From Macrostomum lignano (Eukaryota): 64,000 nucleotides of DNA. Within the stretch, counting starts at the first letter, position 1. Every line of letters starts with the position of its first letter. A program made the position numbers and the translations under genes. The stretch spans positions 124,001 to 188,000 of the forward strand of contig NIVC01001632.1 of assembly GCA_002269645.1 (NCBI GenBank), written 5' to 3'. Positions 3,101 to 18,759 of this stretch are shown piece by piece. The notes beneath the pieces are model-generated. The model was not told the DNA's origin and searched no databases. It was given only the letters and a program-made list of their open reading frames with translations.

Positions 3101-6100
3101 AGGTTCCGTGACGGACAGGCGTCCATTGCTGTGATGTTTCTCTTGGCGGCCACCTCTGAGTTCCACACACCTATACGGAGAATTGAATATTACTGAAATA
3201 TATCCATTTGAACGAGTCCGATCAAGCACCAATTATCGCACAGATTATAAAGTGCTCGATCTCTTACCAACAGAATAGTAGCAACATAGGCAGCTATGGG
3301 TACTCCAGGTCACATTGCGAAATCGCTCCTCCCCAGTGGTCAGGTGAAAGTTTGTTGCGTCGCCTGTCAAAGTCAATAATTTTCATATTACTTAAGTCGG
3401 GGCAGACAATTTGACTCAACTTCCATTAGCTGCAACCCATCTCAATAGTCTTAGTCTTAGTCCCAACAGAACTTTGGAAACGAGAACAGTTTTCGTTTAG
3501 AAACTTGGCTTCGAAAATTTTTCATGCAGAAAAGTTTTTATTTGTTAAACATCCCTCGCTTCCGAAGTTATTTATGGGTCATTGTTTGTAAGAAGTTGTA
3601 CAGAACCGTTGGGTTAGCGCTCCGACCCAGCGTCGAATGTACATCGAATTTTCGTAGTTTACAAAAAAATGGCTCGTAATAATAATTATTATTGATTACA
3701 CCTGCCCTCATGGCCAGATGTGCAACTGAAAGCTCAGCCGCAGCTATTGCGCGGCGCATCTGAAGGTTGCGTACGGCTGTTCAGTCCAAGGACTGGGGAG
3801 GGGGTCGCCACACAGCCTCAATTACCCCAGCTAATGCTGGCACGCCCATTTTACAGCTGGGTGAACTGAAGCAATGCAGAGTTCAGTGCCTTGCTCAAGG
3901 ACACAAATTGTTCCTAGTGGGTCAAGAATCGAACCCCCGACCTTGGGGTTCGATCCCCGCTCTGACTACTAGGCTGCAAGCCAACAGCATTCGTCACTCT
4001 TCAACAGTTTACAAAGCTTTTAAAGCTCACAGAAAGCCAGCTCGGCGATACGGTTGCTGGCACGCAGCAGCAGGGAGCCCTCGAATCGGTCGCTGGCAAA
4101 GTCGATGGCCTCGACGGTCCGACGGAGGACGCAAATCTCACCAACGACGAGCCAGGAGCTGCTGCGAAGCTCGGCAGCCGATGACTCTGGAGCATCGGAC
4201 CTGTCCTGCTCCGTAGAAGTTGACCGCGTCAGAGAAGCTGACAGCTGAGGCTGATGCCTGCGCTGCTCGATAAAGTAGATCCTGCCGCGGGCGTCTCCAA
4301 CGGCAACCATCTCGCCGGCTGGAGTGGGAAAAGCAAACTTTTCATCCACTCAGTTTATGCACTCTTCAACAAGCAAGTGCGTTTTTCGATTGATCTACTT
4401 CGTCTGGTCAATTAATGTGACTTAAGAAATTGTCAAAAGCTGTAGGGTAGTCAGGATTCACTTCTGTGGGTTATTAAATAATAATAATTTATTACACCTG
4501 TCCCAATGGGCCAGATGTGCAACCGACAGCTCAGCCGCAGCTATTGCATCTGAAGGGCTGCGTACGGCTGTTCAGTCCAAGGACTGGGGGGTAGCCACTC
4601 ACACAGCCTCAATTACCCCAGACAATGCTGGCACCCACTTTACAGCTGGGTGAACTGAAGCAATGCAGAGTTAAGTGTCTTGCTCAAGGACACAAATTGT
4701 TCTTAGTGGGATCGAGAATCGAACCCCCCGACCTTCAAATCGTGAGTCCGTCGCTCTAATCGCTAGGCTACAACCCCTGTTGGTTAGTATAACATTATTA
4801 TAGAATTTTGCAGTTGTCAATGTCAAAATTTGAAGTTTGTATAAAATTTTAGGAGGCAGTTTTCACCAAATACGCTCGAAATACGTTTTTGTAGAATGGA
4901 GATTTTCATTTTTGCAGCAAAAAATTGTAATTACTTTTGATAGGAGTCAGATCCAATGTTCAAATTTTAAAACTAATAATAAATGATAATTTTATAGTCT
5001 TCACACTCATCAGTAGTGAGCCTTCATACGAGGGTAACGTAGAATAAAATGTTTTAATTGGGCTATTATAGACCATATTTATGACAAAAAACTTAGCCTA
5101 GTCAGTGTTGTCTCATTTGGCTGAATGCTTGAACTATTGCAGTTAAAAATTAATTTAGTAACATAATCAATAAGCTAATAATGAATAAAAAGATTCATAA
5201 TACGAATGAATTAAATTGTGTCATTTTTATTATTTTTAGTCACAAAATATGTACGTTGGACAAAAAAGTTAAACCTACCCGTACAATCCTAATTTTATAA
5301 GCAGAAAGCTTTACAAATATGAACATTGGGTCTGCCTCCTCTTCAGCCGATAAGCTGCTTACAAAGCTTCAAACAAAGGAAACATCAACGCCAAGTTGAA
5401 ACTCACAGGGAGCGGTTGCGATTGCAGTGATTTTGTGTCTGGCCGTCCTCCGTTTGAAAACCTGGCACAGAACGGAGCCGGACCGCTGCAGAATGATCAG
5501 CTGACCAGTTCTAGTTCCCAGGATCAGCGTTCCGCTGCTGTGCCACAGAACGCTAGAGATGCACTTTTTCTGAAGATAAGATCGTGTAATAGTGCTGAGG
5601 CCGGCCACACAAACAGAAAATACAGTAGGTTTTGGTGGGTTCCATTTTAGGATGAATTGAAGGAAGGAAGGAAGGAAGGAAGGAAGGAAGGAAGGAAGGA
5701 AGGAAGGAAGGAAGGAAGGAAGGAAGGAATGAAGGAAGGAAGGAAGGAAGGAAGGAAGGAAGGAAGGAAGGAAGGAAGGAAGGAAGGAAGGAAGGAAGGA
5801 AGGAAGGAAGGAAGGAAGGAAGGAAGGAAGGAAGGAAGGAAGGAAGGAAGGAAGGAAGGAAGGAGGAAGGAAGGAGGAGGAAGGAAGGGAAGGAAGGAAG
5901 GAAGGAAGGAAGGAAGGAAGGAAGGGAGGAAGGAAGGAAGGAAGGAAGGAAGGAAGGAAGGAAGGAAGGAAGGAAGGAAGGAAGGAAGGAAGGAAGGAAG
6001 GAAGGAAGGAAGGAAGGAAGGAAGGAAGGAGGAAGGAAGGAGGAAGGAAGGAAGGAAGGAAGGAAGGAAGGAAGGAAGGAAGGAAGGAAGGAAGGAAGGA

Positions 6101-9100
6101 AGGAAGGAAGGAAGGAAGGAAGGAAGGAAGGAAGGAAGGAAGGAAGGAAGGAAGGAAGGAAGGAAGGAAGGAAGGAAGGAAGGAAGGAAGGAAGGAAGGA
6201 AGGAAGGAAGGAAGGAAGGAAGGAAGGAAGGAAGGAAGGAAGGAAGGAAGGAAGGAAGGAAGGAAGGAAGGAAGGAAGGAAGGAAGAAAGGAAGGGAGGA
6301 AGGAAGGAAGGAAGGTAGGAAGGAAGGAAGGGAGGAAGGAAGGAAGGGAGGAAGGAAGGAAGGAAGGAAGGAAGGAAGGAAGGAAGGAAGGAAGGAAGGA
6401 AGGAAGGAAGGAAGGAAGGAAGTCCCAGTAAGTCTTGGACACTGATTACAATCAATAATAAAGAAGTTAAAGCTGCTCAGCACTTACCGGTAGAACGGCA
6501 GTGTGCAGACACCGGTGGGACTCGGCATTGTACATTCGCACCTGGCTGTCGTAGCCGGCCGTGACGAAGACAGACGGGTGGCTGGTCAGGCCGCCGAGGC
6601 TGCGCAGCCGATCGTAGTGCCCGGCAGTCAGTGGATCTGGAAGCAGCTGCGCCTCCGCCAGAGGGTTCTCCGGAGTATGCTCTGAGTCGTCTCCAGAAGT
6701 TACTTCGGTTTCACGTGCTCCTGGCGCTGGGAGACGGCACAGAAAGATGGCATTGGTTGTGGTGCCAAGCGCCAGCAGAATGCCGCCAATGTCCTGGTCC
6801 TGCTGACTTGCGTTATCGGCAGCGTCTTTTTCTGCGCCACCAGCAGTCTTGCAGGCGCAGACGCAACGAATTCCGGCGTTGCCTGCAGCTTCCTCTGGCA
6901 GGGCCAGACTGCTCACGGCTGACGATTCATTTTGTTTTTTTAACGAAGTTGACGAGCCAGTTTCTTGGCGATTTTCATCAGGACTCATTGTTGGTGGCAT
7001 GTCGGATGCGCGCCAGACTAACAGGCGCCCATCGCGACCGCCGCTGAGAATCCAGTTCTGGTCATTGAATAGGAGCTCCAGTAAGGTGAACACGGGACCC
7101 TGTTCAGATAGGCAGGTAATAGTAGCTGTAGATTGTATTTTCCGTCTTTGAGCCTGTCCAAGTCCTAGGAAAATTCCCTTATAGTCCACAGTATTGAGGG
7201 CCAAACACAAAGGCCGAGTGCGTATGACGAGTACACTGCCCGATTATGAGATAGTCTGGGCCGATGTACATCCTGTGGGAGCGTGTGCCTTCGTTCGTAT
7301 CCGGGTCAACGGATTGTAGAGTGTTCTACCTCCCGTAAAAAAGGTAAAAGAAGTTAATCATAGGATGCTACTGTAAGTAGGTAAGTGCACGCATGCGCAA
7401 CTGAAACTTAACAATTAACCATGTTACTGTATAATACGCAATAAGTTATGTTACCCTTTTAGCGCAACACATGAGTTGTAATGCTATTTTGGACTGCAAA
7501 TTCGCCTATAAATACAAGCGGTCCGAAGCGGACCAGGAGCCAACTCCCGACGAGAGGAGAAGCTCCGAAGAGGAAGCCTTAGGAGGACTTCCTGATCACC
7601 AAGTCAATCGAGACTCGGTCGAGTTGTTGCGGTAAGCCTTCCTTATTTGCGCCCGTTGTGTTAGAGACGTCTCGCTCAAGTCTAGTGTTACTTGAGTTTA
7701 GTTGAGTCTGTTGAGACTCTTGAGTCTGTTTAGACTCTACTGGTTGCAGTCTCCAGAAGGACTGCCACTGATAGATCTTAGAAGACTATCAGTGGTTTCC
7801 GGAGCTATACCTAGAGTGCATAGAGGCACTGCTAGAAGAAGGAGGCTTAACTCGAACCGCTGTTCGGCGCAGGGTACCCATTGTTGATACGAGGCCTCTG
7901 ATTGGTCCTGACTGCAGATACCGGCCGGAAGGAACTTCATCGAAAGTCCAAGAAGAACCAGGACCAGAACCAAAGAAGAGACAAGGCGCCTGATCTACGG
8001 ATCATCTGAGACCAGAACTACTGGTGACTAGACCTACAGCGAGATCTAAAAAGAGTACTCAACGGAGGATACAACTAAAGGTAAGTGATACCTTTATCTG
8101 ATAACTGGGTTGCCTAGCAAGTAGCTAGAAGTGATTGTTCCTTGATTACAGTTGAGGACTGGTAATAAGGAACACATCAGGATTGAGCACTGCTCGAATT
8201 CCCTACTTCGAGCTTCTTATGAGTTCCTTACTCCTCGGACCACCGGTCACTCAGTAGAAGTTTCTTCGGCTGCTCAACAATTGTGAACATTGCTTTTATT
8301 GTAAAAAGGCTCATGTCTTCTGTCTAATATAGAAGCATATAAACTCCTAAAATATAAATACAAAACCGAAAATTAAATGCTTCACACCTGATGCAGCTGG
8401 CTTCCCAGTCGTATTATTCGACAGCCGCTACTCTCGTTCTCCGGATCGGCGTCATCCCACACGGCAACTCCTCCGCTTGAGTCGCCAGTGACCAGCAGGC
8501 CATCGGTGCAGTAGACCGCGCTAACCACGTACCTCGCCGACAGGGCAGTCACGTCACCCTCTCGGACCAGCTGCAGCTGTTTCTTACCATCGCCATCGCG
8601 ATCCCAATGACGCCACCAGGCGATGTGGCCGCGCCCGACCGTCACGAACGCGCCGTCGACGCCGGGGCTCACAGTGACGTCGCAGACAACAGCTGCAGAC
8701 GGTCGAACCATGGCGAGAATCGATCGGGACTCGAGGCTCCAGAGCTTCAGCTGCGGTTGAGGCGAGCTGTCGTCCACGGATATCAGGCGCTGTTGCGATG
8801 GTGGAATGAATGCGGAATTACATAATGTTGATGGTGGATGGTTCGAGGCCGACCAAATAAACTAAAGAATAAAGTAGATCTAACTGCGTGAAATTTTGGT
8901 CTGACTCTCAACCAGAAGAATCCTGCATGTATATAACAAGGACGACTTAAGTAGAAGGACGGGAAACCTCGTTTCTTAGAAAATTTTTGAAGGCACTTTT
9001 TCCCGAAAAAATACACTGCGGAGATAGGAAATTTTCATTTTTTCAGCACAAAAATTGCTATAACTTTTGATAGGAGGCAGATCCAGTGTTGATCTTTTGA

Positions 9101-12100
9101 TATGTTGTGCCTTTTTTATTGCTCTATCGATATTTATAAAGCTTTCCGTTCAGAAAATTAGGATTCTATGTTAATTTTTTATTCTACGTATATTTCCTGC
9201 ATCTAAAAATCACAAAAAGGCATGACACAGCTCCAATATTTGGTTTTATGAATCTATTTTATCATCTATGTTACGACTATTTGCTATACAGTCAGGTAAG
9301 AAGGATAAAATAGACTCATAAAATCAAAGAGCCAAGCCGTGGCATTCTAATGTATTTCAAGCACAAGACACATGAAAATATACGTAGAATAAAAAATTAA
9401 CATAGAATCCTAATTTTCTGAACGGAAAGCTTTATAAATATCGATAGAGCAATAAAAAAGGCACAACATATCAAAAGATCAACACTGGATCTGCCTCCTA
9501 TCAAAAGTTATAGCAATTTTTGTGCTGAAAAAATGAAAATTTCCTATCTCCGCCGTGTATTTTTTCGGAAAAAAGTGCCTTCAAAAAAATTCTAAGAAAC
9601 GAGGTTTCCCGTCCTTCTACTTAAGTCGTCCTTGGTATATAATTCATTGCATATTCACACCGCTCTGGTTTGAATTGAAGATAAAACATAAAACAGTCTC
9701 CCTGTCACTGCGTTCTCGATCCTGCAGCGATATCCCGCTTAAAAAATTCAAGCCGATTCCTGGTTAAATTCCAAGTTAAACTGTGAATATTCAAGGTTTA
9801 TCTAGGAATGAGAGTTAAGATCGCTTCCAAGTTAAACTGACGTTTGAATTCATTGCACTTTAACAAAGTACGGATTAAAAAAGTTGAAAAAATGACTGTT
9901 AAACTTAGCTAACTGTAAATAAATTTCAAAGTTTAAAGTTAAAATATTAGGCTGAACTTCTGTACACACATAAATGAAACGCAGCATGAGAAGTAATAGA
10001 TTTGAATGTTATCGCTCGCTGCTCAGACATACGCTGTTCGGCATCAGTGTTCACTTGTGTCGCCAAAGTTTAATGCACACGCTTCAGCTGATGGCCATAG
10101 ACAAACTGCCGATAGGTTAATAATGTTTCAACTGATGGCCATAGACAAACTGCCGATAGGTTAATAATGTTTCAGCTGATGGCCATAGACAAACTGCCGA
10201 TAGGTTAATAATGTTTCAACTGATGCCCATAGACAAACTGCCGATAGGTTAATAATGTTTCAACTGATGCCCATAGACAAACTGCCGATAGGTTAATAAT
10301 GTTTCAGCTGATGGCCACAGACAAACTGCCGATAGGTTAATAATGTTTCAACTGATGCCCATAGACAAACTGCCGATAGGTTAGGAATTTTTCATCCGTA
10401 GACTTGCCGAAATTGAAGTCACTTCTGCTAAAGCCGAGATCAAAATGGCATACTAAGCTAAGACAGACGATCCGCTATAGACTATATACGAACACACTCG
10501 GTTTTTGCTCACATACAGGACTGTACGCTGGTTTTTGTTAAATTAGTCAACACATTGATAGTAAAAATGTTAATAAATGAAGGATCCTGTTACGCGTGTA
10601 TTTTAGAGTACTTAGTTGACAAATTCCAGATGGTATTAGAATTTTATATCATCATATTACATAGCGCTTTTTAGGCCTTTTGAAAATCGTTGGAAAGCTA
10701 GTAAAGTCTGGTCCGTTGCGTCATTCATTGTCTTGTAGATCTTCAGTTGGCGATGGCGTGGGCGACCTTCTTGATGTTCCTGATGACGCGGACCACCTTC
10801 CTGATGCGGATGCCCTTCTTGGCCAGCTGCTGGAAGCCCTCCTCCGTCAGGCCGGACTCTCCCAGGTTGGCCAGGGCCTCCAGGGCCGAGGCGGTCTCGG
10901 CCTCCTCCTGCTGGCTGGGAGCGGCGGCGGCCAGAGCCACGCAGAGCAGAAGTCCGAGAGCGAGCTGCCACTTCATGCTTGACTCTGAGTCTGTTGCTAT
11001 GCGAGCTGATGAAGCTGAGAGTATGCGATTAAGCTGGCTCGGTTGTCTCATGGAACGGTCGGGAGATCGGCATTTATGCACAAAACAGCGGCACGTTTTT
11101 CCGGTACAAGGAGCGGCACGCGTCAGAGTTTGAGCTGGGGACTCAAGTGAGTCCATGTACTGCTACAGTACTTCTTTTCTTATGCAAGTTCGACCAAAGG
11201 GCAAACAATCCTTTTCTGTGAGTAGATGGTTTACTTATGATTCATTTTTCGGCAGCCTCAATGTAACAATAACTTGAACAAAGTTTCTCATGCTCCCACT
11301 CAGTTACTCAGGATTTCAAGAGAAATCATGTCAGTAGCTTTCCATTGGCAAGCCATTATGATTGTTTGTGTTTGCCCAGCTTGTGTGCTCAGAGTACAAC
11401 AGCTCACAAAGTAGCAAGAGACATTGCTAATTAAACATCTCTCGCGTAGAGTTTACGAGCCGCAAGTCAATCTTGTCCTGAAAGGAATTTTTACCATAAT
11501 TTATGCCTTTTAGGAGGTAAAGCTTACATCGGGGTCCAGAAAGACCAGACACACGATTGACGAAGCTGCAGAAGAGGCTTCGCTGTCACATAGTTCGGCA
11601 ACCGTCACCAGGGTGGCGGTGCTCCAAACGCGTACGCCGCCGCCACAGCCGCCACTGGCAATGGTGTTGCCGTCCGGGTGCAGACAGAGGCTGCAGAAAA
11701 CAAAGAAACACACGATGAGAAAATGGTACATTTGACCTCAATAACAGTTGCACCATGACGCAACGCTTTCGGCGACATGGTCACGCAACCAGCCCTGGGT
11801 CAATTCTGTAAATTTCGCTGACTCCTGAGCAGATTTAATACTGTACGCAGGCCCCGACTTTCTAATCTTTAGGCATGTACACTCTCTGAGCGGACTAGTA
11901 GAGGTCTAAATATGGAGTTTACGAATAAAAAAGGCATGAATTTTATCGTCCTCAATCCACTGTGACGCATAACATCCCCGTTTCATTCGACAACAGGGGT
12001 CGGCAAACTCCGGCCTGCTGGTCACATGCGGCCCGCGAAGCCTCTTCATCTGGCCCTCGGGTCTTGTGAAACTTCACAATGGCAATCCGGCCCACTCAAG

Positions 12101-15100
12101 GTTCATGTCTCTTTTCAGCACTCTCTTTTTATCTCTTCTCTCCCCTCTTCTCTCCCCTCTGCTCTCCCCTCTTCTCTCCCCTCTTCTCTCCCCTCTTCTC
12201 TCCCCTCTTCTCTCCCCTCTGCTCTCCCCTCTTCTCTCCCCTCTTCTCTCCCCTCTTCTCTCCCTCTTCTCTCCCTCTTCTCTCCCCTCTTCTCTCCCCT
12301 CTGCTCTCCCTCTTCTCTCCCTCTTCTCTCCCCTCTGCTCTCCCCTCTTCTCTCCCCTCTTCTCTCCCCTCTGCTCTCCCCTCTTCTCTCCCCTCTTCTC
12401 TCCCCTCTTCTCTCCCCTCTTCTCTCCCCTCTTCTCTCCCCTCTTCTCTCCCCTCTTCTCTCCCCTCTTCTCTCCCCTCTTCTCTCCCCTCTTCTCTCCC
12501 CTCTTCTCTCCCCTCTTCTCTCCCCTCTTCTCTCCCCTCTTCTCTCCCCTCTTCTCTCCCCTCTTCTCTCCCTCTTCTCTCCCCTCTTCTCTCCCTCTTC
12601 TCTCCCCTCTTCTCTCCCCTCTTCTCTCCCCTCTTCTCTCCCCTCTTCTCTCCCCTCTTCTCTCCCCTCTTCTCTCCCTCTTCTCTCCCCTCTTCTCTCC
12701 CTCTTCTCTCCCCTCTTCTCTCCCCTCTTCTCTCCCCTCTTCTCTCCCTCTTCTCTCCCCTCTTCTCTCCCCTCTTCTCTCCCCTCTTCTCTCCCTCTTC
12801 TCTCCCTCTTCTCTCCCCTCTTCTCTCCCCTCTTCTCTCCTCTCTTCTCTCCCCTCTTCTCTCCTCTCTTCTCTCCCCTCTTCTCTCCTCTCTTCTCTCC
12901 CCTCTTCTCTCCTCTCTTCTCTCCTCTCTTCTCTCCCCTCTTCTCTCCCCTCTTCTCTTCCCTCTTCTCTACCCTCTTCTCTCCCCTCTCCTCTCCCCTC
13001 TTCTCTCCCCTCTTCTCTCCCCTCTTCTCTCAAGCTAAGCTATCAAATCAAGCTATCAAATTACCTTTTTACATCGCCAGCATGCTCTCGATAGTGCCTC
13101 TGCTTTGAGCCGCTTCCGTGAGGTGAGTAGCTGAGCAGTACGACCAGCCGGCCGGTGGGGTAGACCAGCTCGCCCGTGCTCGGCAGCGATGCCAGGTTCT
13201 TTCGACAGTCGTTGCCCCGGTAACCGTAGCTTAAGAGGAGGAAACAGAGTTTTTCGGTCATGCCATCGCCAATGCGGCACGTGAGAATTTTGTCAAACAT
13301 TTCCAATGGCTTTCCATCAGTGTCTACACCTGGGGTCGGCAATTTTTTTTACCTTAAGGCACAGATAGAGAACCCAGCGCATGGCTGCGAGCCAGAGGAG
13401 GGGATAAAGAAGAGGGGAGTAGAGAAGAGAGATAGGAGAAATTAGAAACGAGGGAAAAACGAAAATAGGGGAAAAAGGACGAGAGGAGAAAAGAGATGAA
13501 ATAGGAGGGGAGAGAAGAGCTTGTAGAGAAGGGAGAAAAGGGAGAGGAAAGAAGAGAGAAGTGAAGGAGAGGAGAGGAGAGGAGAGGAGAGGAGAGGAGA
13601 GGAGAGGAGAGGAGAGGAGAGGAGAGGAGAGGAGAGGAGAGGAGAGGAGAGGAGAGGAGAGGAGAGGAGAGGAGGAGAGAGGAGAGGAGAGGAGAGGAGA
13701 GGAGAGGAGAGAGGAGAGGAGAGGAGAGGAGAGGAGAGGAGAGGAGAGGAGAGGAGAGGAGAGGAGAGAGAGAGAGGAGAGGAGAGGAGAGGAGAGGAGA
13801 GGAGAGGAGAGGAGAGGAGAGGAGAGGAGAGGAGAGGAGAGGAGAGGAGAGGAGAGGAGAGGAGAGGAGAGGAGACGAGAGAAGAGGAGACGAGAGAAGA
13901 GGAGACGAGAGGAGAGGAGACGAGAGGAGAGGAGACGAGAGGAGAGGAGAGGAGAGGAGAGGAGAGGAGAGGAGAGGAGACGAGAGAAGAGGAGACGAGA
14001 GGAGAGGAGAGGAGAGGAGAGGAGAGGAGAGGAGAGGAGAGGAGAGGAGAGGAGAGGAGAGGAGAGGAGAGGAGAGGAGAGGAGACGAGACGAGACGAGA
14101 GGAGACGAGAGGAAAGGAGAGGAGAGGAGAGGAGAGGAGACGAGAGAGAAGGAGAGAAGATTGTAGAGAAGGGAGCTGAGAAGAGCCAAAAACCTTTAGC
14201 GGGGCCGGATTGCTGTTTTGAAGTTTTTGTGCACCACATGCGGCCCTTCGGGCAGGAGTTTGCCGACCCCTAATCCACATCTATGCTTCCACCTTACACC
14301 CAGTCCAGTTCGAGCCGGTCAACGGGCTCCGGCTGCACCTCCGTGGTCGCCCCGTCGGTCCATTGTATGTCATCTGGACACGTGATCAGCCGCTCGCCAA
14401 ATCTGCAGTTGATTTCCAGCTGCCTGATTGCCATCGCTATCGGATGCTGAATAGGAGACGGCGTCAGCTGTGCTGCTGGGTGCTGCTGATGCGGTATCGC
14501 CAGTTGATTTTTACTGCCACCTCCCAGGTGCGCCACTGCAGGGGTTGGAACGGCTTCGATTCCAGAAGCAGCAGCAAACGAACTCCTGGACCCGTTGATT
14601 CCGATCGACTTCTTAGCTGGCGATTGGCCTCGCAAACCGTCTTTGCGATTGTCTTTGCCATTCTCAACGACTTCGTCGCCGCTCTCCGTTGATGCGAGGG
14701 TCACCGTGGACCAGGTGGCACTGCTGGCTGCCTGCAAGACGGTGCAAAGTAAACTAATGCAGTCAATTATGTTCTGGTACGACAAGCAATATCACACAAG
14801 GTCACATGTTGAACCCGCGTGATTTACCGAGCTGGTCCCGCTGAGCGATTGAAGACTCGCGTTGATCGCCGCACTGACGGTCTTGGCCGATTCCTGCCTG
14901 GGCGCCTCCGGGTGCGCTTCGAAGTAGGCCTGCTGTGCCTGCTGCAGGAACTTCATGAACTTCTGCCAGCTGAATTGGAGAAGTTGGGATTTTATGGAGA
15001 GTAAAAAATTACGGCTGGTAAGAAAGACGTCGCTTAAAAATGATAAAAATGTTTTTCCCTCACCGCACAGCTCCAGTTGCTGAATCTTTACATTGATGGA

Positions 15101-18100: not shown

Positions 18101-18759
18101 GAAACACTAATTTAATAATAATAACAATTGATAACACCTGCCCTAATGGCCAGATGTGCAACCGACAGCTCAGCCGCAGCTACTGCGCGGCGCATCTGAA
18201 GGCTGCGTACGGCTGTTCAGTCCAAGGACTGGGGGGTCGTCACACACAGCCTTAATTACCCCAGCTAATGCTGGCACCCATTTTACAGCTGGGTGAACTG
18301 AAGCAATGCAGAGTTAAGTGTCCTGCTCAAGGACACAAATTGTTCTTAGTGGGATCGAGAATCGAACCCCGACCTTCAAGTCGTGAGTCCAACGCTCTAA
18401 CCACTGGGCTACAAACACTAAAGGCAGTCAATTTTGCAATTTTGCAACCAGCTGAAATATGTATAACGAATTTTCTAATCTAATTTTCTTAAGCATTTTT
18501 CCCGAAAACGTTGGGCCTTCAAGTACAAATTCCAGGGAGCGTCCTTGTTCTTCTAGCGGTCCTTGGAAGCTTAAACGGTTCTTGGCCTTCAGCATAATTA
18601 GTCAAATTAGTCAGCGCTTCCTGCATGCTCACCGGCGCAGTTGCTGTGGGCTGCCCAGCTGCCAATTCTCTTCATTCTTTGAGGCGGCGAGCCCTCGTTG
18701 GAGAGGCCGAAGTTGCAGACCTCGCGGCCCTTCTGCCGCTGCCGGGGCTGCTTCTGCAT
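181..18759 (-). CDS. EML: EML/EMAP-family (HELP motif + WD40 TAPE domain) microtubule-associated protein with N-terminal EF-hand-like region; 14 coding exons, ~1167 aa
   Basis: Exons assembled by GT-AG sites with consistent phases: 18633-18759, 16084-16640, 15064-15161, 14828-14969, 14298-14731, 13065-13229, 11528-11690, 8388-8789, 6488-7099, 5407-5569, 4031-4318, 3268-3363, 3037-3170, 181-303 (3504 nt, open to TGA at 181-183). Spliced product gives LELDWV|[12 protein letters not shown] (HELP hallmark), [39 protein letters not shown] and C-terminal [17 protein letters not shown], all typical of EML proteins. The first exon and start codon are less certain. Confidence 0.88.
379..3012 (+). repeat. 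41-bp minisatellite (CCAACAGCATCCAACATCAACCGGACACCAACCAACTCTAC)n, ~64 copies, fills the last EML intron
   Basis: Directly visible period. Translation cycles through three frames every 123 nt, producing the spurious 269-aa and 618-aa ORFs. Confidence 0.97.
3677..3978 (-). mobile_element. tRNA-derived SINE (CORE-like body, (TTA)n tail), copy 1
   Basis: Reverse complement has a Pol III A box (TAGCC..AGT..) and B box (GGTTCGATTC), body TCCTTGAGCAAGGCAC...TTCACCCAGCTGTAAAATGGG and an ATT-repeat tail; five copies in the window. Confidence 0.88.
4475..4772 (-). mobile_element. tRNA-derived SINE, copy 2
   Basis: Near-identical to the copies at 3677 and 18111. Confidence 0.88.
4862..5345. mobile_element. 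Degraded copy of the foldback MITE family seen at 8937-9634
   Basis: Shares TTTTCATTTTT.CAGCA.AAAAATTG...TTTTGATAGGAG.CAGATCCA.TGTT and the opposite-arm AATCCTAATTTT..AAAGCTTTA..ACATTGGGTCTGCCTCCT. Confidence 0.6.
5659..6422 (+). repeat. (GGAA)n microsatellite, ~760 bp
   Basis: Directly visible. Confidence 0.98.
7200..8290 (+). mobile_element. Unclassified insertion, possibly a solo LTR or retroelement terminal repeat
   Basis: ~1.1-kb non-coding block of mixed composition in an EML intron, with TATA box CCTATAAATAC (~7505) followed by a GC-richer leader and two donor-like GGTAAG sites. I could not define TG..CA ends with a TSD. Confidence 0.3.
8937..9634. mobile_element. Foldback/MITE element with ~260-bp near-perfect terminal inverted repeats
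   Basis: 8937-~9196 (CAAGGACGACTTAAGTAGAAGGACGGGAAACCTCG...) is the reverse complement of ~9374-9634; TATA flanks on both sides suggest a TA target (Tc1/mariner-like). Confidence 0.9.
10085..10383 (+). repeat. 44-bp minisatellite (CAGCTGATGGCCATAGACAAACTGCCGATAGGTTAATAATGTTT), ~7 copies
   Basis: Period 44 counted (10085, 10129, ...). Confidence 0.95.
10743..10976 (-). CDS. Small secreted prepropeptide (77 aa), candidate cationic alpha-helical antimicrobial peptide precursor, nested in an EML intron
   Basis: [19 protein letters not shown] (signal-like) + [33 protein letters not shown] (7 Glu) + KK + [23 protein letters not shown] (+7, no acidic residues). GC3-rich codons like the host exons, set in AT-rich intron. 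Confidence 0.75.
   Translation of the reverse strand: MKWQLALGLLLCVALAAAAPSQQEEAETASALEALANLGESGLTEEGFQQLAKKGIRIRKVVRVIRNIKKVAHAIAN
11071..11078 (-). promoter_or_regulatory. Possible TATA-like box (CATAAATG) for the nested peptide gene
   Basis: ~95 nt upstream of the ATG. C/EBP-like TTATGCAA (~11180) and a GACTCA/TGAGTC dyad (~11140) lie further upstream; short motifs are weak evidence. Confidence 0.3.
11994..13031 (-). mobile_element. hAT (Charlie/MER58-like) MITE, one end only, with expanded CT-rich interior
   Basis: Starts CAGGGGTCGGCAAACTCC; the following GCAATCCGGCCC..AAGGTT..CTCTT.TCAGC is homologous to the reverse complement of 14160-14272. Confidence 0.7.
12135..13031 (+). repeat. 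(CTCTTCTCCC/CCCTCTTCT)n 9-10-bp pyrimidine array
   Basis: Directly visible. Confidence 0.96.
13330..14272 (+). mobile_element. hAT (Charlie/MER58-like) MITE, both ends present, interior expanded to (GAGAG)n
   Basis: Left CTGGGGTCGGCAA..AAGGCACAGATAG..TGCGAGCCA; right GGAGTTTGCCGACCCCTA. Degraded 8-bp TSD GTCTACAC / ATCCACAT (three transitions), compatible with the Charlie-type NTCTAGAN preference. Confidence 0.75.
13565..14150 (+). repeat. (GAGAG)n pentamer microsatellite
   Basis: Directly visible. Confidence 0.97.
15232..16078 (+). repeat. 27/28-bp minisatellite (GCAGTCTGAACGGACTGTAAGTGACA[C]T)n, ~30 copies
   Basis: Visible period; each unit contains a CAGTC..GACTG dyad; begins ~5 nt from the donor of exon 16084-16640. 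Confidence 0.96.
16698..16803 (+). repeat. Degenerate TTAGGG/TAGGG telomere-like tract
   Basis: GGTTAGGGTAGGGTAGGGTAGGGCTAGGGTAGGGTTAGGG... Confidence 0.7.
17602..17918 (+). repeat. (CCTA)n microsatellite
   Basis: Directly visible. Confidence 0.95.
18111..18412 (-). mobile_element. tRNA-derived SINE, copy 3, with 9-bp TSD AAACACTAA
   Basis: TSD at 18102-18110 and 18413-18421; head (reverse complement) TGTAGCCCAGTGGTTAGAGCG...GGTTCGATTCTC. Confidence 0.92.

Follow-up and report, generated by a model that had tools for sequence, protein, structure and literature searches.

A 64,000-nucleotide stretch of the genome of the flatworm Macrostomum lignano (contig NIVC01001632.1, positions 124,001 to 188,000; hereafter the window, whose own numbering is used throughout) holds a single-exon open reading frame (ORF) of 77 codons inside an intron of an EML-like gene. 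Judged by its relatives elsewhere, this ORF is a real gene and an unannotated copy of a multigene family, called here the MKWQ family after its characteristic N-terminus. The proteins of the family combine a near-invariant, signal peptide-like N-terminus, an acidic propiece, a conserved Lys-Lys (KK) junction and a basic tail that differs widely between members. The family is lineage-restricted and tandemly expanding; its members are found in databases as hypothetical proteins and have never been described as a family. With a probability of approx. 0.5, the proteins are secreted precursors, each of which would release a membrane-active host-defence (antimicrobial or cytolytic) peptide, and the gene in the window would be a nested member of this family that has its own promoter.

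The nested gene and its promoter

The gene, its predicted parts and the adjoining exons of the host gene occupy the following positions, the evidence being given in brackets.

10743-10976, minus strand: complete single-exon coding sequence (CDS) of a prepropeptide, 77 codons plus TGA (ORF translation; GC content at third codon positions, GC3, of 0.91; frame kept relative to paralogues, with in-frame indels)
10920-10976, minus strand: predicted signal peptide, amino acids (aa) 1-19 (hydropathy; near-invariant in the family; helix 4-17 in the AlphaFold2 (AF2) model)
10821-10919, minus strand: anionic propiece, aa 20-52, with 7 Glu, a net charge of -7 and the family motif ALEALANL (alignment, composition)
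10815-10820, minus strand: conserved KK junction, aa 53-54, presumed convertase site (K53 and K54 at least 90% conserved in alignment A6)
10746-10814, minus strand: cationic C-terminal tail, aa 55-77, net charge +7, predicted to be helical, with internal RK and KK (composition, AF2)
10977-11047, minus strand: predicted 5' untranslated region (5' UTR), its 5' end estimated from the position of the TATA-like box (alignment with paralogues)
11072-11078, minus strand: TATA-like box CATAAAT ([C/T]ATAAAT in 10 of 10 aligned genomic members and in the member on Logan contig L005)
11089-11103, minus strand: family promoter motif CGGAAAAACGTGCCG (sole exact match in the 64-kb window)
10643-10648, minus strand: possible but weak poly(A) signal variant TATAAA, 95 nt past the stop codon (consensus match only)
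11510-11731, minus strand: host EML-like exon 5' of the nested gene, given by ORF bounds (Beta-prop_EML profile positions 13-71)
8382-8777, minus strand: host EML-like exon 3' of the nested gene, given by ORF bounds (Beta-prop_EML profile positions 84-186)

The ORF runs on the minus strand from the ATG at 10976-10974 to the TGA at 10745-10743. GC content is 0.60-0.67 at 10700-10999 versus 0.30-0.45 in the flanking sequence, and the values by codon position (0.67 / 0.42 / 0.91) reveal a strong coding periodicity in the frame of the ORF; in the host EML exons, GC3 is 0.55-0.70. Relative to the copy on contig L001, the CDS has indels in multiples of three only. As the ORF is located between the two Beta-prop_EML exons at 11510-11731 and 8382-8777, it lies within an intron of the EML-like gene and on the same strand; a Pfam profile scan also recognised, on the minus strand, a HELP motif (13061-13342) and the second EML propeller, Beta-prop_EML_2 (6467-7210). 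Thus, the initial annotation of this DNA, which had described a single-exon ORF of 77 aa at 10743-10976 and placed it as a GC-rich island in an AT-rich EML intron on the strand of the host gene, was accurate in each of these respects. Moreover, because related genes elsewhere share the frame, the in-frame indels and the promoter, the ORF is more than a chance reading frame.

The promoter was recognised by aligning the 220 nt upstream of the window gene with those of nine paralogous copies. In this alignment, unrelated upstream sequence turns abruptly into the motif CGGAAA[A/C]ACGTGC[C/T]G, which is followed after ~11 nt by [C/T]ATAAAT and then by a conserved 5' UTR block and the ATG. In all ten copies the motif lies ~125 nt and the TATA-like box ~100 nt upstream of the ATG; the shared promoter spans ~40 bp, and the sequence beyond it is unrelated between subfamilies. 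When up to two mismatches are allowed, the motif has 2 matches in the window versus 0.11 expected. An exact match is found upstream of every family copy on contigs L001 to L004, truncated copies included, and a close variant precedes the family member on L005. The conserved 5' UTR block of the window gene is CTCAGCTTCATCAGCTCGCA (about 11000-11019). Given this conserved, TATA-containing promoter of its own, the ORF is, as its sequence indicates, an independent nested gene and not an exon of its host.

The gene model of one paralogue, P0010 (a partial CDS), begins ~40 nt downstream of its TATA-like box. As the Mlig_3_7 gene models were derived from RNA-seq and transcriptome assemblies (PMC5730564), the paralogues are therefore transcribed from about the position that the promoter predicts. 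By analogy, the transcript of the window gene should start near 11040-11050. The longest ORF in the same frame begins upstream, with an ATG at 11156 (137-aa product), and a further in-frame ATG is present at 11051; given the predicted start, these two ATGs would lie upstream of it or at its very edge, and neither is conserved in the paralogues. For these reasons, the extended 137-aa ORF was rejected as the product of the gene. Poly(A) signals of the window gene are restricted to weak variant hexamers, and 3' untranslated regions are not conserved between paralogues.

The precursor and the MKWQ family

By hydropathy, the N-terminus of the window protein has the n/h/c layout of a signal peptide, with Kyte-Doolittle 9-mer means of up to 3.0 across residues 5-13, and SignalP 4.1 is positive for paralogues with a near-identical N-terminus (PMC10414684 S5). 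The protein contains 7 Glu and no Asp, and all of the Glu fall within residues 20-52; when counted together with the KK, the propiece has a net charge of -5. The 23-aa tail comprises 4 Arg and 3 Lys, lacks acidic residues and ends with ...HAIAN directly before the stop codon. It thus has no C-terminal Gly and hence no amidation signal, unlike most paralogues. The helical hydrophobic moment of the tail (0.54 at 100 degrees, 0.72 at 110 degrees) is comparable to the values obtained with the same script for residues 1-23 of cecropin A and of LL-37. In the AF2 model computed with the family alignment, helices extend over residues 4-17, 25-38 and 45-76, and the predicted local distance difference test (pLDDT) score of the tail is ~70. 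The middle piece of the tail, VVRVIRNI, is similar to IFRVRVHI(G), a short peptide of a paralogue; as a whole, the tail is unique among the relatives found. A Pfam scan of the 77-aa protein returned no family at E <= 10, and neither the tail nor the family profile had a meaningful sequence match in the PDB. On the basis of the sequence features and the family alignment, the initial annotation was right to divide the precursor into signal, anionic propiece, dibasic site and cationic tail: the hydrophobic N-terminus, the 7 Glu, the KK and the 23-aa tail with 7 Arg/Lys and no acid were all re-computed and are correct, the absence of a C-terminal Gly follows from the translation, and the proposed amphipathic helix agrees with the hydrophobic moment, although the margin over shuffled tails is modest (see below).

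A phmmer search with the window protein identified two M. lignano proteins, P0001 and P0002 (E = 4e-12), which have the same signal and propiece but other tails. A profile built from these three proteins gave 13 matches among 1.84 billion representative proteins; 11 of them are family-like, 10 from M. lignano and 1 from Logan contig L005 (run SRR31628392). The profile E-values of further members range from 5e-26 to 2e-4, and homologues in the frame of the ORF reach 1e-35. Searching 90%-identity clusters with the profile yielded 21 clusters, and the family totals at least 30 sequence clusters. The best identity of the window protein to any relative is only 58-59%. Named members are M. lignano "hypothetical proteins" of the Mlig_3_7 annotation; BOX15_Mlig026085g2, Mlig010792g3, Mlig025003g1, Mlig001477g4, Mlig010443g3 and others are true homologues of the window gene, with which they share an MKWQ/MRWQ signal, an acidic propiece, the KK, a cationic tail, a single exon, the promoter motif and the 5' UTR.

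The N-terminus M[KR]WQ[LF]xLGLLLC...A (typically MKWQLxLGLLLC) is near-invariant in the family. In particular, residues M1, W3, Q4, L7, G8, L9, L10, L15, P20, K53 and K54 are at least 90% conserved (alignments A1, A5 and A6). The acidic region, which often contains an ALEAL(A/S)N motif, is followed by the conserved KK and a basic tail of 6-47 aa. The window protein possesses every shared trait, including an acidic region of the LEAL type. The tails of the paralogues fall into several kinds:

short His-rich tails: GFHVHFHG (many copies), FHLHLPGK, FIHIHFG
short Arg-rich tails: IFRVRVHIG, WLRVRARVRIG
medium tails: FRIRIRWGRVARNVLRLLGK, WRRRRRFRWRKAIRVAGKVAKAVL
long tail: WRIRFRRIRIRWRRVYRVVRTAYRIYRHLPFPGK
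Pro/Arg-repeat tail: FLRVRLPRVRMPRVRLPRVRLPRLRVRFRWSKK
Arg/Tyr/His-rich tails: up to 47 aa

The most numerous subfamily (P0010, P0026, P0032 and others) would release GFHVHFH-amide or FIHIHF-amide, peptides with His at position 3. At a free N-terminus, such a His forms a Cu/Ni-binding motif of the amino-terminal copper and nickel (ATCUN) type, which suggests metal-dependent chemistry for these members, though not for the window copy.

The ORF is uninterrupted in the window gene and in each of the nine paralogous genomic copies read. The copy in the window is solitary in its EML intron; the other copies occur in pairs or clusters, with the exception of that on L003, and their genomic surroundings are unrelated and devoid of EML sequences. 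Among M. lignano contigs, L002 carries tandem pairs, L001 an inverted pair and L004 a cluster of at least 4 intact and 2 truncated copies. Defective copies lie on L004 at 33392-33545 and 35035-35190 and also at 26217-26354 on the minus strand; the truncated ones retain the promoter, the 5' UTR and the first 9 codons and then continue into a repeat, and one further copy is frameshifted. Because the family forms clusters and includes inverted and tandem duplicates as well as truncated copies, these sequences indicate birth-and-death evolution.

The two copies on L001 (NIVC01001363.1, 9783-10371 and 14150-14730) are 97-98% identical head-to-head inverted repeats that flank ~3.8 kb with remnants of a piggyBac-type transposase (DDE_Tnp_1_7; L001 12797-13366 and 11889-12494). 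For the window gene, the possibility of piggyBac cargo was considered and found to be unsupported, as no transposase adjoins the gene and its likeness to L001 is confined to the promoter, 5' UTR and CDS. Some database records of the family are misleading. The GenBank model of BOX15_Mlig026085g2 (P0002) is chimeric, its first exon being the antisense strand of the tail of the other copy; P0001 (UniRef A0A1I8G6Q8) is named "SERPIN domain-containing", and in P0012 (UniRef A0A1I8JEL3), named "Sushi domain-containing", the prepropeptide forms the C-terminal end of a 634-aa fusion model.

The existence of paralogues that combine a constant signal and propiece with a variable mature peptide, a check proposed along with the initial annotation, was strongly confirmed by these at least 30 clusters. 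The accompanying claim of novelty stood in part: the window copy is found in no public protein set, but its paralogues have been deposited as hypothetical proteins, and several of them had already been listed as antimicrobial peptide (AMP)-like in PMC10414684 S5.

A possible role in host defence and competing explanations

In the host-defence reading, the compact promoter (CGGAAAAACGTGCCG, ~11 nt and the TATA-like box) would drive synthesis of a short mRNA, and the near-invariant N-terminal signal would direct the product into the secretory pathway, where the Glu-rich propiece could electrostatically mask the +7 tail during transport. Cleavage by a convertase after the KK would then release a cationic, largely helical C-terminal peptide, either as the full 23-mer or as shorter pieces, which may act outside the cell as a membrane-active effector on microbes or other cells. 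At the level of the family, keeping the signal and propiece constant while the tails vary would provide a diverse peptide arsenal. For the window copy, we infer transcription, secretion, the cleavage site and activity, and an antimicrobial function of its peptide is plausible on the grounds of its composition and architecture.

The charges of the two halves of the precursor are consistent with such masking. Across 33 distinct members, propiece charge and tail charge are correlated with r = -0.80 (a statistic that ignores relatedness), and tail charge reaches +19 with matching propiece charge; such tracking is what one would expect of a propiece that keeps a potentially harmful cationic peptide masked up to the point of cleavage. 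The ratio of non-synonymous to synonymous substitution rates (dN/dS, Nei-Gojobori) is 0-0.7 for the signal, intermediate for the propiece and 0.5-1.35 for the tail; with 5-39 codons behind each regional value, positive selection is not established. The AMP repertoire of flatworms was previously undescribed (Irvine et al. 2023, PMC10414684). In S5 of that study, BOX15_Mlig026130g1-3, Mlig008283g1, Mlig025063g1 and Mlig001477g4 are SignalP-positive and AMP-like by 73-91% of 11 predictors, and some family homologues appear there under the flatworm AMP-like peptide designations fAMP-LP 71, 116 and 544. The pipeline category of these paralogues is "Same genome" or "Ungrouped", and the selection of peptides for synthesis took place after single-genome groups had been discarded (PMC10414684). 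The family peptide and signal strings and the gene IDs that were searched occur in the main text of no searchable paper, family gene IDs are absent from the supplements of PMC5816591 and PMC12732829, and a literature search for "Macrostomum lignano" and "antimicrobial peptide" gave nothing relevant. In the literature, no M. lignano cell atlas was found.

Several points weigh against the host-defence reading, beginning with the limits of the charge and divergence statistics given above. The amphipathicity of the window tail exceeds that of composition-matched shuffles only marginally (P = 0.045), and the AF2 model is of low confidence overall (mean pLDDT 62). As dibasic sites occur within the tail (RK at tail positions 5-6, KK at 15-16), whose complete cleavage would yield GIRI(RK), VVRVIRNI and VAHAIAN, the mature form is uncertain and the 23-mer need not be the product. 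Neither the 77-aa nor the 137-aa product has a record among ~15 billion proteins, including Logan assemblies; an exact look-up of P0001 in the assembly index likewise gave no record. Many paralogues encode very short His-rich peptides (GFHVHFH plus Gly) that have hardly any charge at neutral pH and differ from typical AMPs, and most carry G, GK or GKR amidation signals, which are typical of neuroendocrine processing. Furthermore, AMP predictors have high false-positive rates, with signalling and protease-inhibitor proteins scored as AMPs (PMC10414684).

The amidation signals would be at home in a family of signalling peptides, that is, neuropeptide- or hormone-like prohormones that enter regulated secretion and are cut at the KK by a PC2-type convertase, trimmed, usually alpha-amidated and recognised by receptors, with the window copy as a divergent, non-amidated member. 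This explanation, which is the main rival and which we regard as unlikely, would account for the conserved KK junction, for the endings of most paralogues (IFRVHVRFG, WLRVRARVRIG, GFHVHFHG, ...LLGK, ...IICGKR), one of which would become an RF-amide, and for the many tails that are similar in size to neuropeptides (6-10 aa). A homologue of PC2 exists in M. lignano; it is essential, and its expression is in the nervous system (PMC4490696). Moreover, flatworm NPP/FLP prohormones resemble the MKWQ family in their signal, dibasic cleavage, Gly-directed amidation (in the case of most paralogues) and small products. However, conservation in the MKWQ family is inverted: the signal and propiece are near-invariant, whereas the bioactive end, the mature region, is unconserved and varies in length (6-47 aa) as well as sequence. 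There are dozens of paralogues, arranged in clusters with pseudogenes and encoding one peptide each, whereas neuropeptide genes are more often few, with multiple copies inside one precursor. The extreme tail charge, up to +19 and matched by that of the propiece, the lack of an amidation signal in the window copy and the absence of the searched family peptide and signal sequences from the searchable literature also argue against signalling. The two roles can nevertheless overlap, because some peptides from Hydra neurons combine neuropeptide-like and antimicrobial properties (PMC10945409).

A lineage-restricted, fast-diverging, multi-copy family might also serve another extracellular cationic role, either as reproductive (seminal-fluid or prostate) peptides or as polycations that bind polyanions or metals in secreted materials (adhesive, mucus, eggshell, stylet). 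Some members are indeed Arg/Tyr-rich or His-rich (HYFVYHSRRRYYRRRFYRR..., GFHVHFH), compositions that are known in coacervating and metal-coordinating biomaterials, and the literature look-up gave no expression data that would exclude any tissue. On the other hand, peptides of 7-23 aa are short for structural ones, masking of a cationic peptide by an anionic propiece is the usual arrangement in cytotoxic peptide precursors, and the searched gene IDs appear in neither searchable paper texts nor the supplements of the two M. lignano papers named above; such a role is considered unlikely.

A real family whose copy in the window makes no product, being a silent duplicate or a young, decaying pseudogene with a still open frame, is fairly improbable. 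The family does include truncated and frameshifted copies, the window gene stands alone in a host intron among repeats resembling miniature inverted-repeat transposable elements (MITEs), and its exact product is in no public protein set searched, while its paralogues have been annotated from RNA evidence. However, the GenBank annotation discarded transcripts that overlap repeats and novel transcripts below 0.5 reads per kilobase per million (RPKM) (PMC5730564), so absence from the annotation is weak evidence. The ORF is intact, its promoter motif is exact, its TATA-like box and 5' UTR block are conserved and a GC3 of 0.91 is retained; the signal peptide is one residue off that of the nearest paralogue (2.0 non-synonymous differences in 19 codons). 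Least probable by far, and rejected, is the notion that the ORF arose by chance in GC-rich intron sequence or serves the host EML gene as an alternative exon. Although GC-rich stretches here carry long ORFs in several frames and the ORF shares the host strand, it ends in a stop codon, has homologues to E 1e-35 in the same frame that differ from it by in-frame indels, and lies immediately downstream of a conserved promoter; moreover, its paralogues are uninterrupted ORFs in unrelated contexts that lack EML.

In architecture, the precursors of the family can be compared with those of amphibian skin peptides (dermaseptin, magainin) and of arthropod linear peptides (melittin, latarcins, ponericins), which consist of a conserved signal, an acidic spacer, a basic processing site and a hypervariable cationic amphipathic peptide with frequent C-terminal Gly amidation. 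The MKWQ family differs from them in that no homology is detectable (Pfam, PDB), the processing site is KK and not KR, and tails can be as short as 6-7 residues. The tail of P0004, FLRVRLPRVRMPRVRLPRVRLPRLRVRFRW, contains repeated PRxR units like those of Bac5, Bac7 and PR-39, which are proline/arginine-rich AMPs; this likeness is one of composition only, the precursor is different and P0004 is not the window copy. The arminins and periculins of Hydra have a bipartite negative/positive charge and occur as clustered, genus-restricted paralogues that arose by rapid tandem expansion (PMC10945409). They resemble the MKWQ family as secreted bipartite-charge precursors with many clustered paralogues in a restricted lineage, but lack sequence kinship with it, are mostly longer, include several Cys-patterned members and have demonstrated antimicrobial activity in Hydra.

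Tentatively, free-living flatworms may have in the MKWQ family their first genuine case of endogenous host-defence peptides, with dozens of Macrostomum-specific genes that place very different warheads in one cassette under a single compact cis-element. If so, the warheads would comprise helical Lys/Arg peptides (as in the window), Arg/Trp-rich and Pro/Arg-repeat peptides and ultra-short amidated His-rich peptides, and their co-regulation through one compact cis-element could be dissected in a transgenic model animal. Transgenesis and RNA interference are established in M. lignano (PMC5730564; PMC4490696); a large lineage-restricted family in this tractable species, with the textbook architecture of AMP precursors, would make flatworm innate-immune effectors, their co-regulation and the diversification of their tails testable. 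The 23-mer (+7) and the Arg/Trp-rich and Pro/Arg-rich paralogue tails are ordinary candidates for antimicrobial screening. Should the products be signalling peptides instead, they would constitute an unusual, massively expanded and hypervariable prohormone family. The family is a good testable lead and not a new kind of system.

The host gene and the rest of the window

The EML-like exon has no protein match at E <= 1e-10 in a collection of 5.8 billion clusters, although Pfam recognises it; the host gene therefore seems to be unannotated, and from its sequence it appears to be rather divergent. The intron that holds the nested gene also contains, ~1.1 kb further downstream, two inverted copies of a possibly MITE-like repeat of ~260-285 nt (8937-9195 and 9350-9634), which are 93-95% identical to L003 6529-6812. 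A second repeat family occurs at 3677-3944, 4478-4776, 18106-18414, 31128-31431 and 36034-36206. Several short repeats of the window are 84-97% identical to M. lignano contigs. An Rfam scan of the whole window found no RNA family.

Two further genes were recognised. On the plus strand, segments at 34102-34401, 52449-54113 and 55114-55554 encode WW, MyTH4 and RhoGAP domains, an architecture like that of ARHGAP39/Vilse; this gene spans more than 20 kb and contains retroelements and satellite arrays in its introns. Between it and the EML-like gene lies a separate, large minus-strand gene (31545-32591, 29925-30998 and 20699-21325), in which a first exon with DUF4485 is followed by long Ala/Glu/Arg-rich, coiled-coil-like exons.

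Two retrotransposons of the type without long terminal repeats (non-LTR) are present on the plus strand. The one at 24174-29230 has split ORFs with RVT_1 and RNase H, and 1172 nt of its 3' part are 98.5% identical to M. lignano L004 10705-11876. The other, at 44695-48798, retains one intact ORF of 1367 aa with an endonuclease, a reverse transcriptase and C2H2 zinc fingers. Introns are filled by very long polypurine/polypyrimidine microsatellite arrays, whose GC skew and AT skew reach or approach +1 or -1, and by several other tandem-repeat arrays (5369-6483, 12026-14280 and 58236-62820; also 90-2139, 36847-39700, 43437-44107 and 55665-56970). These arrays give rise to spurious ORFs of up to ~1500 aa in several frames.

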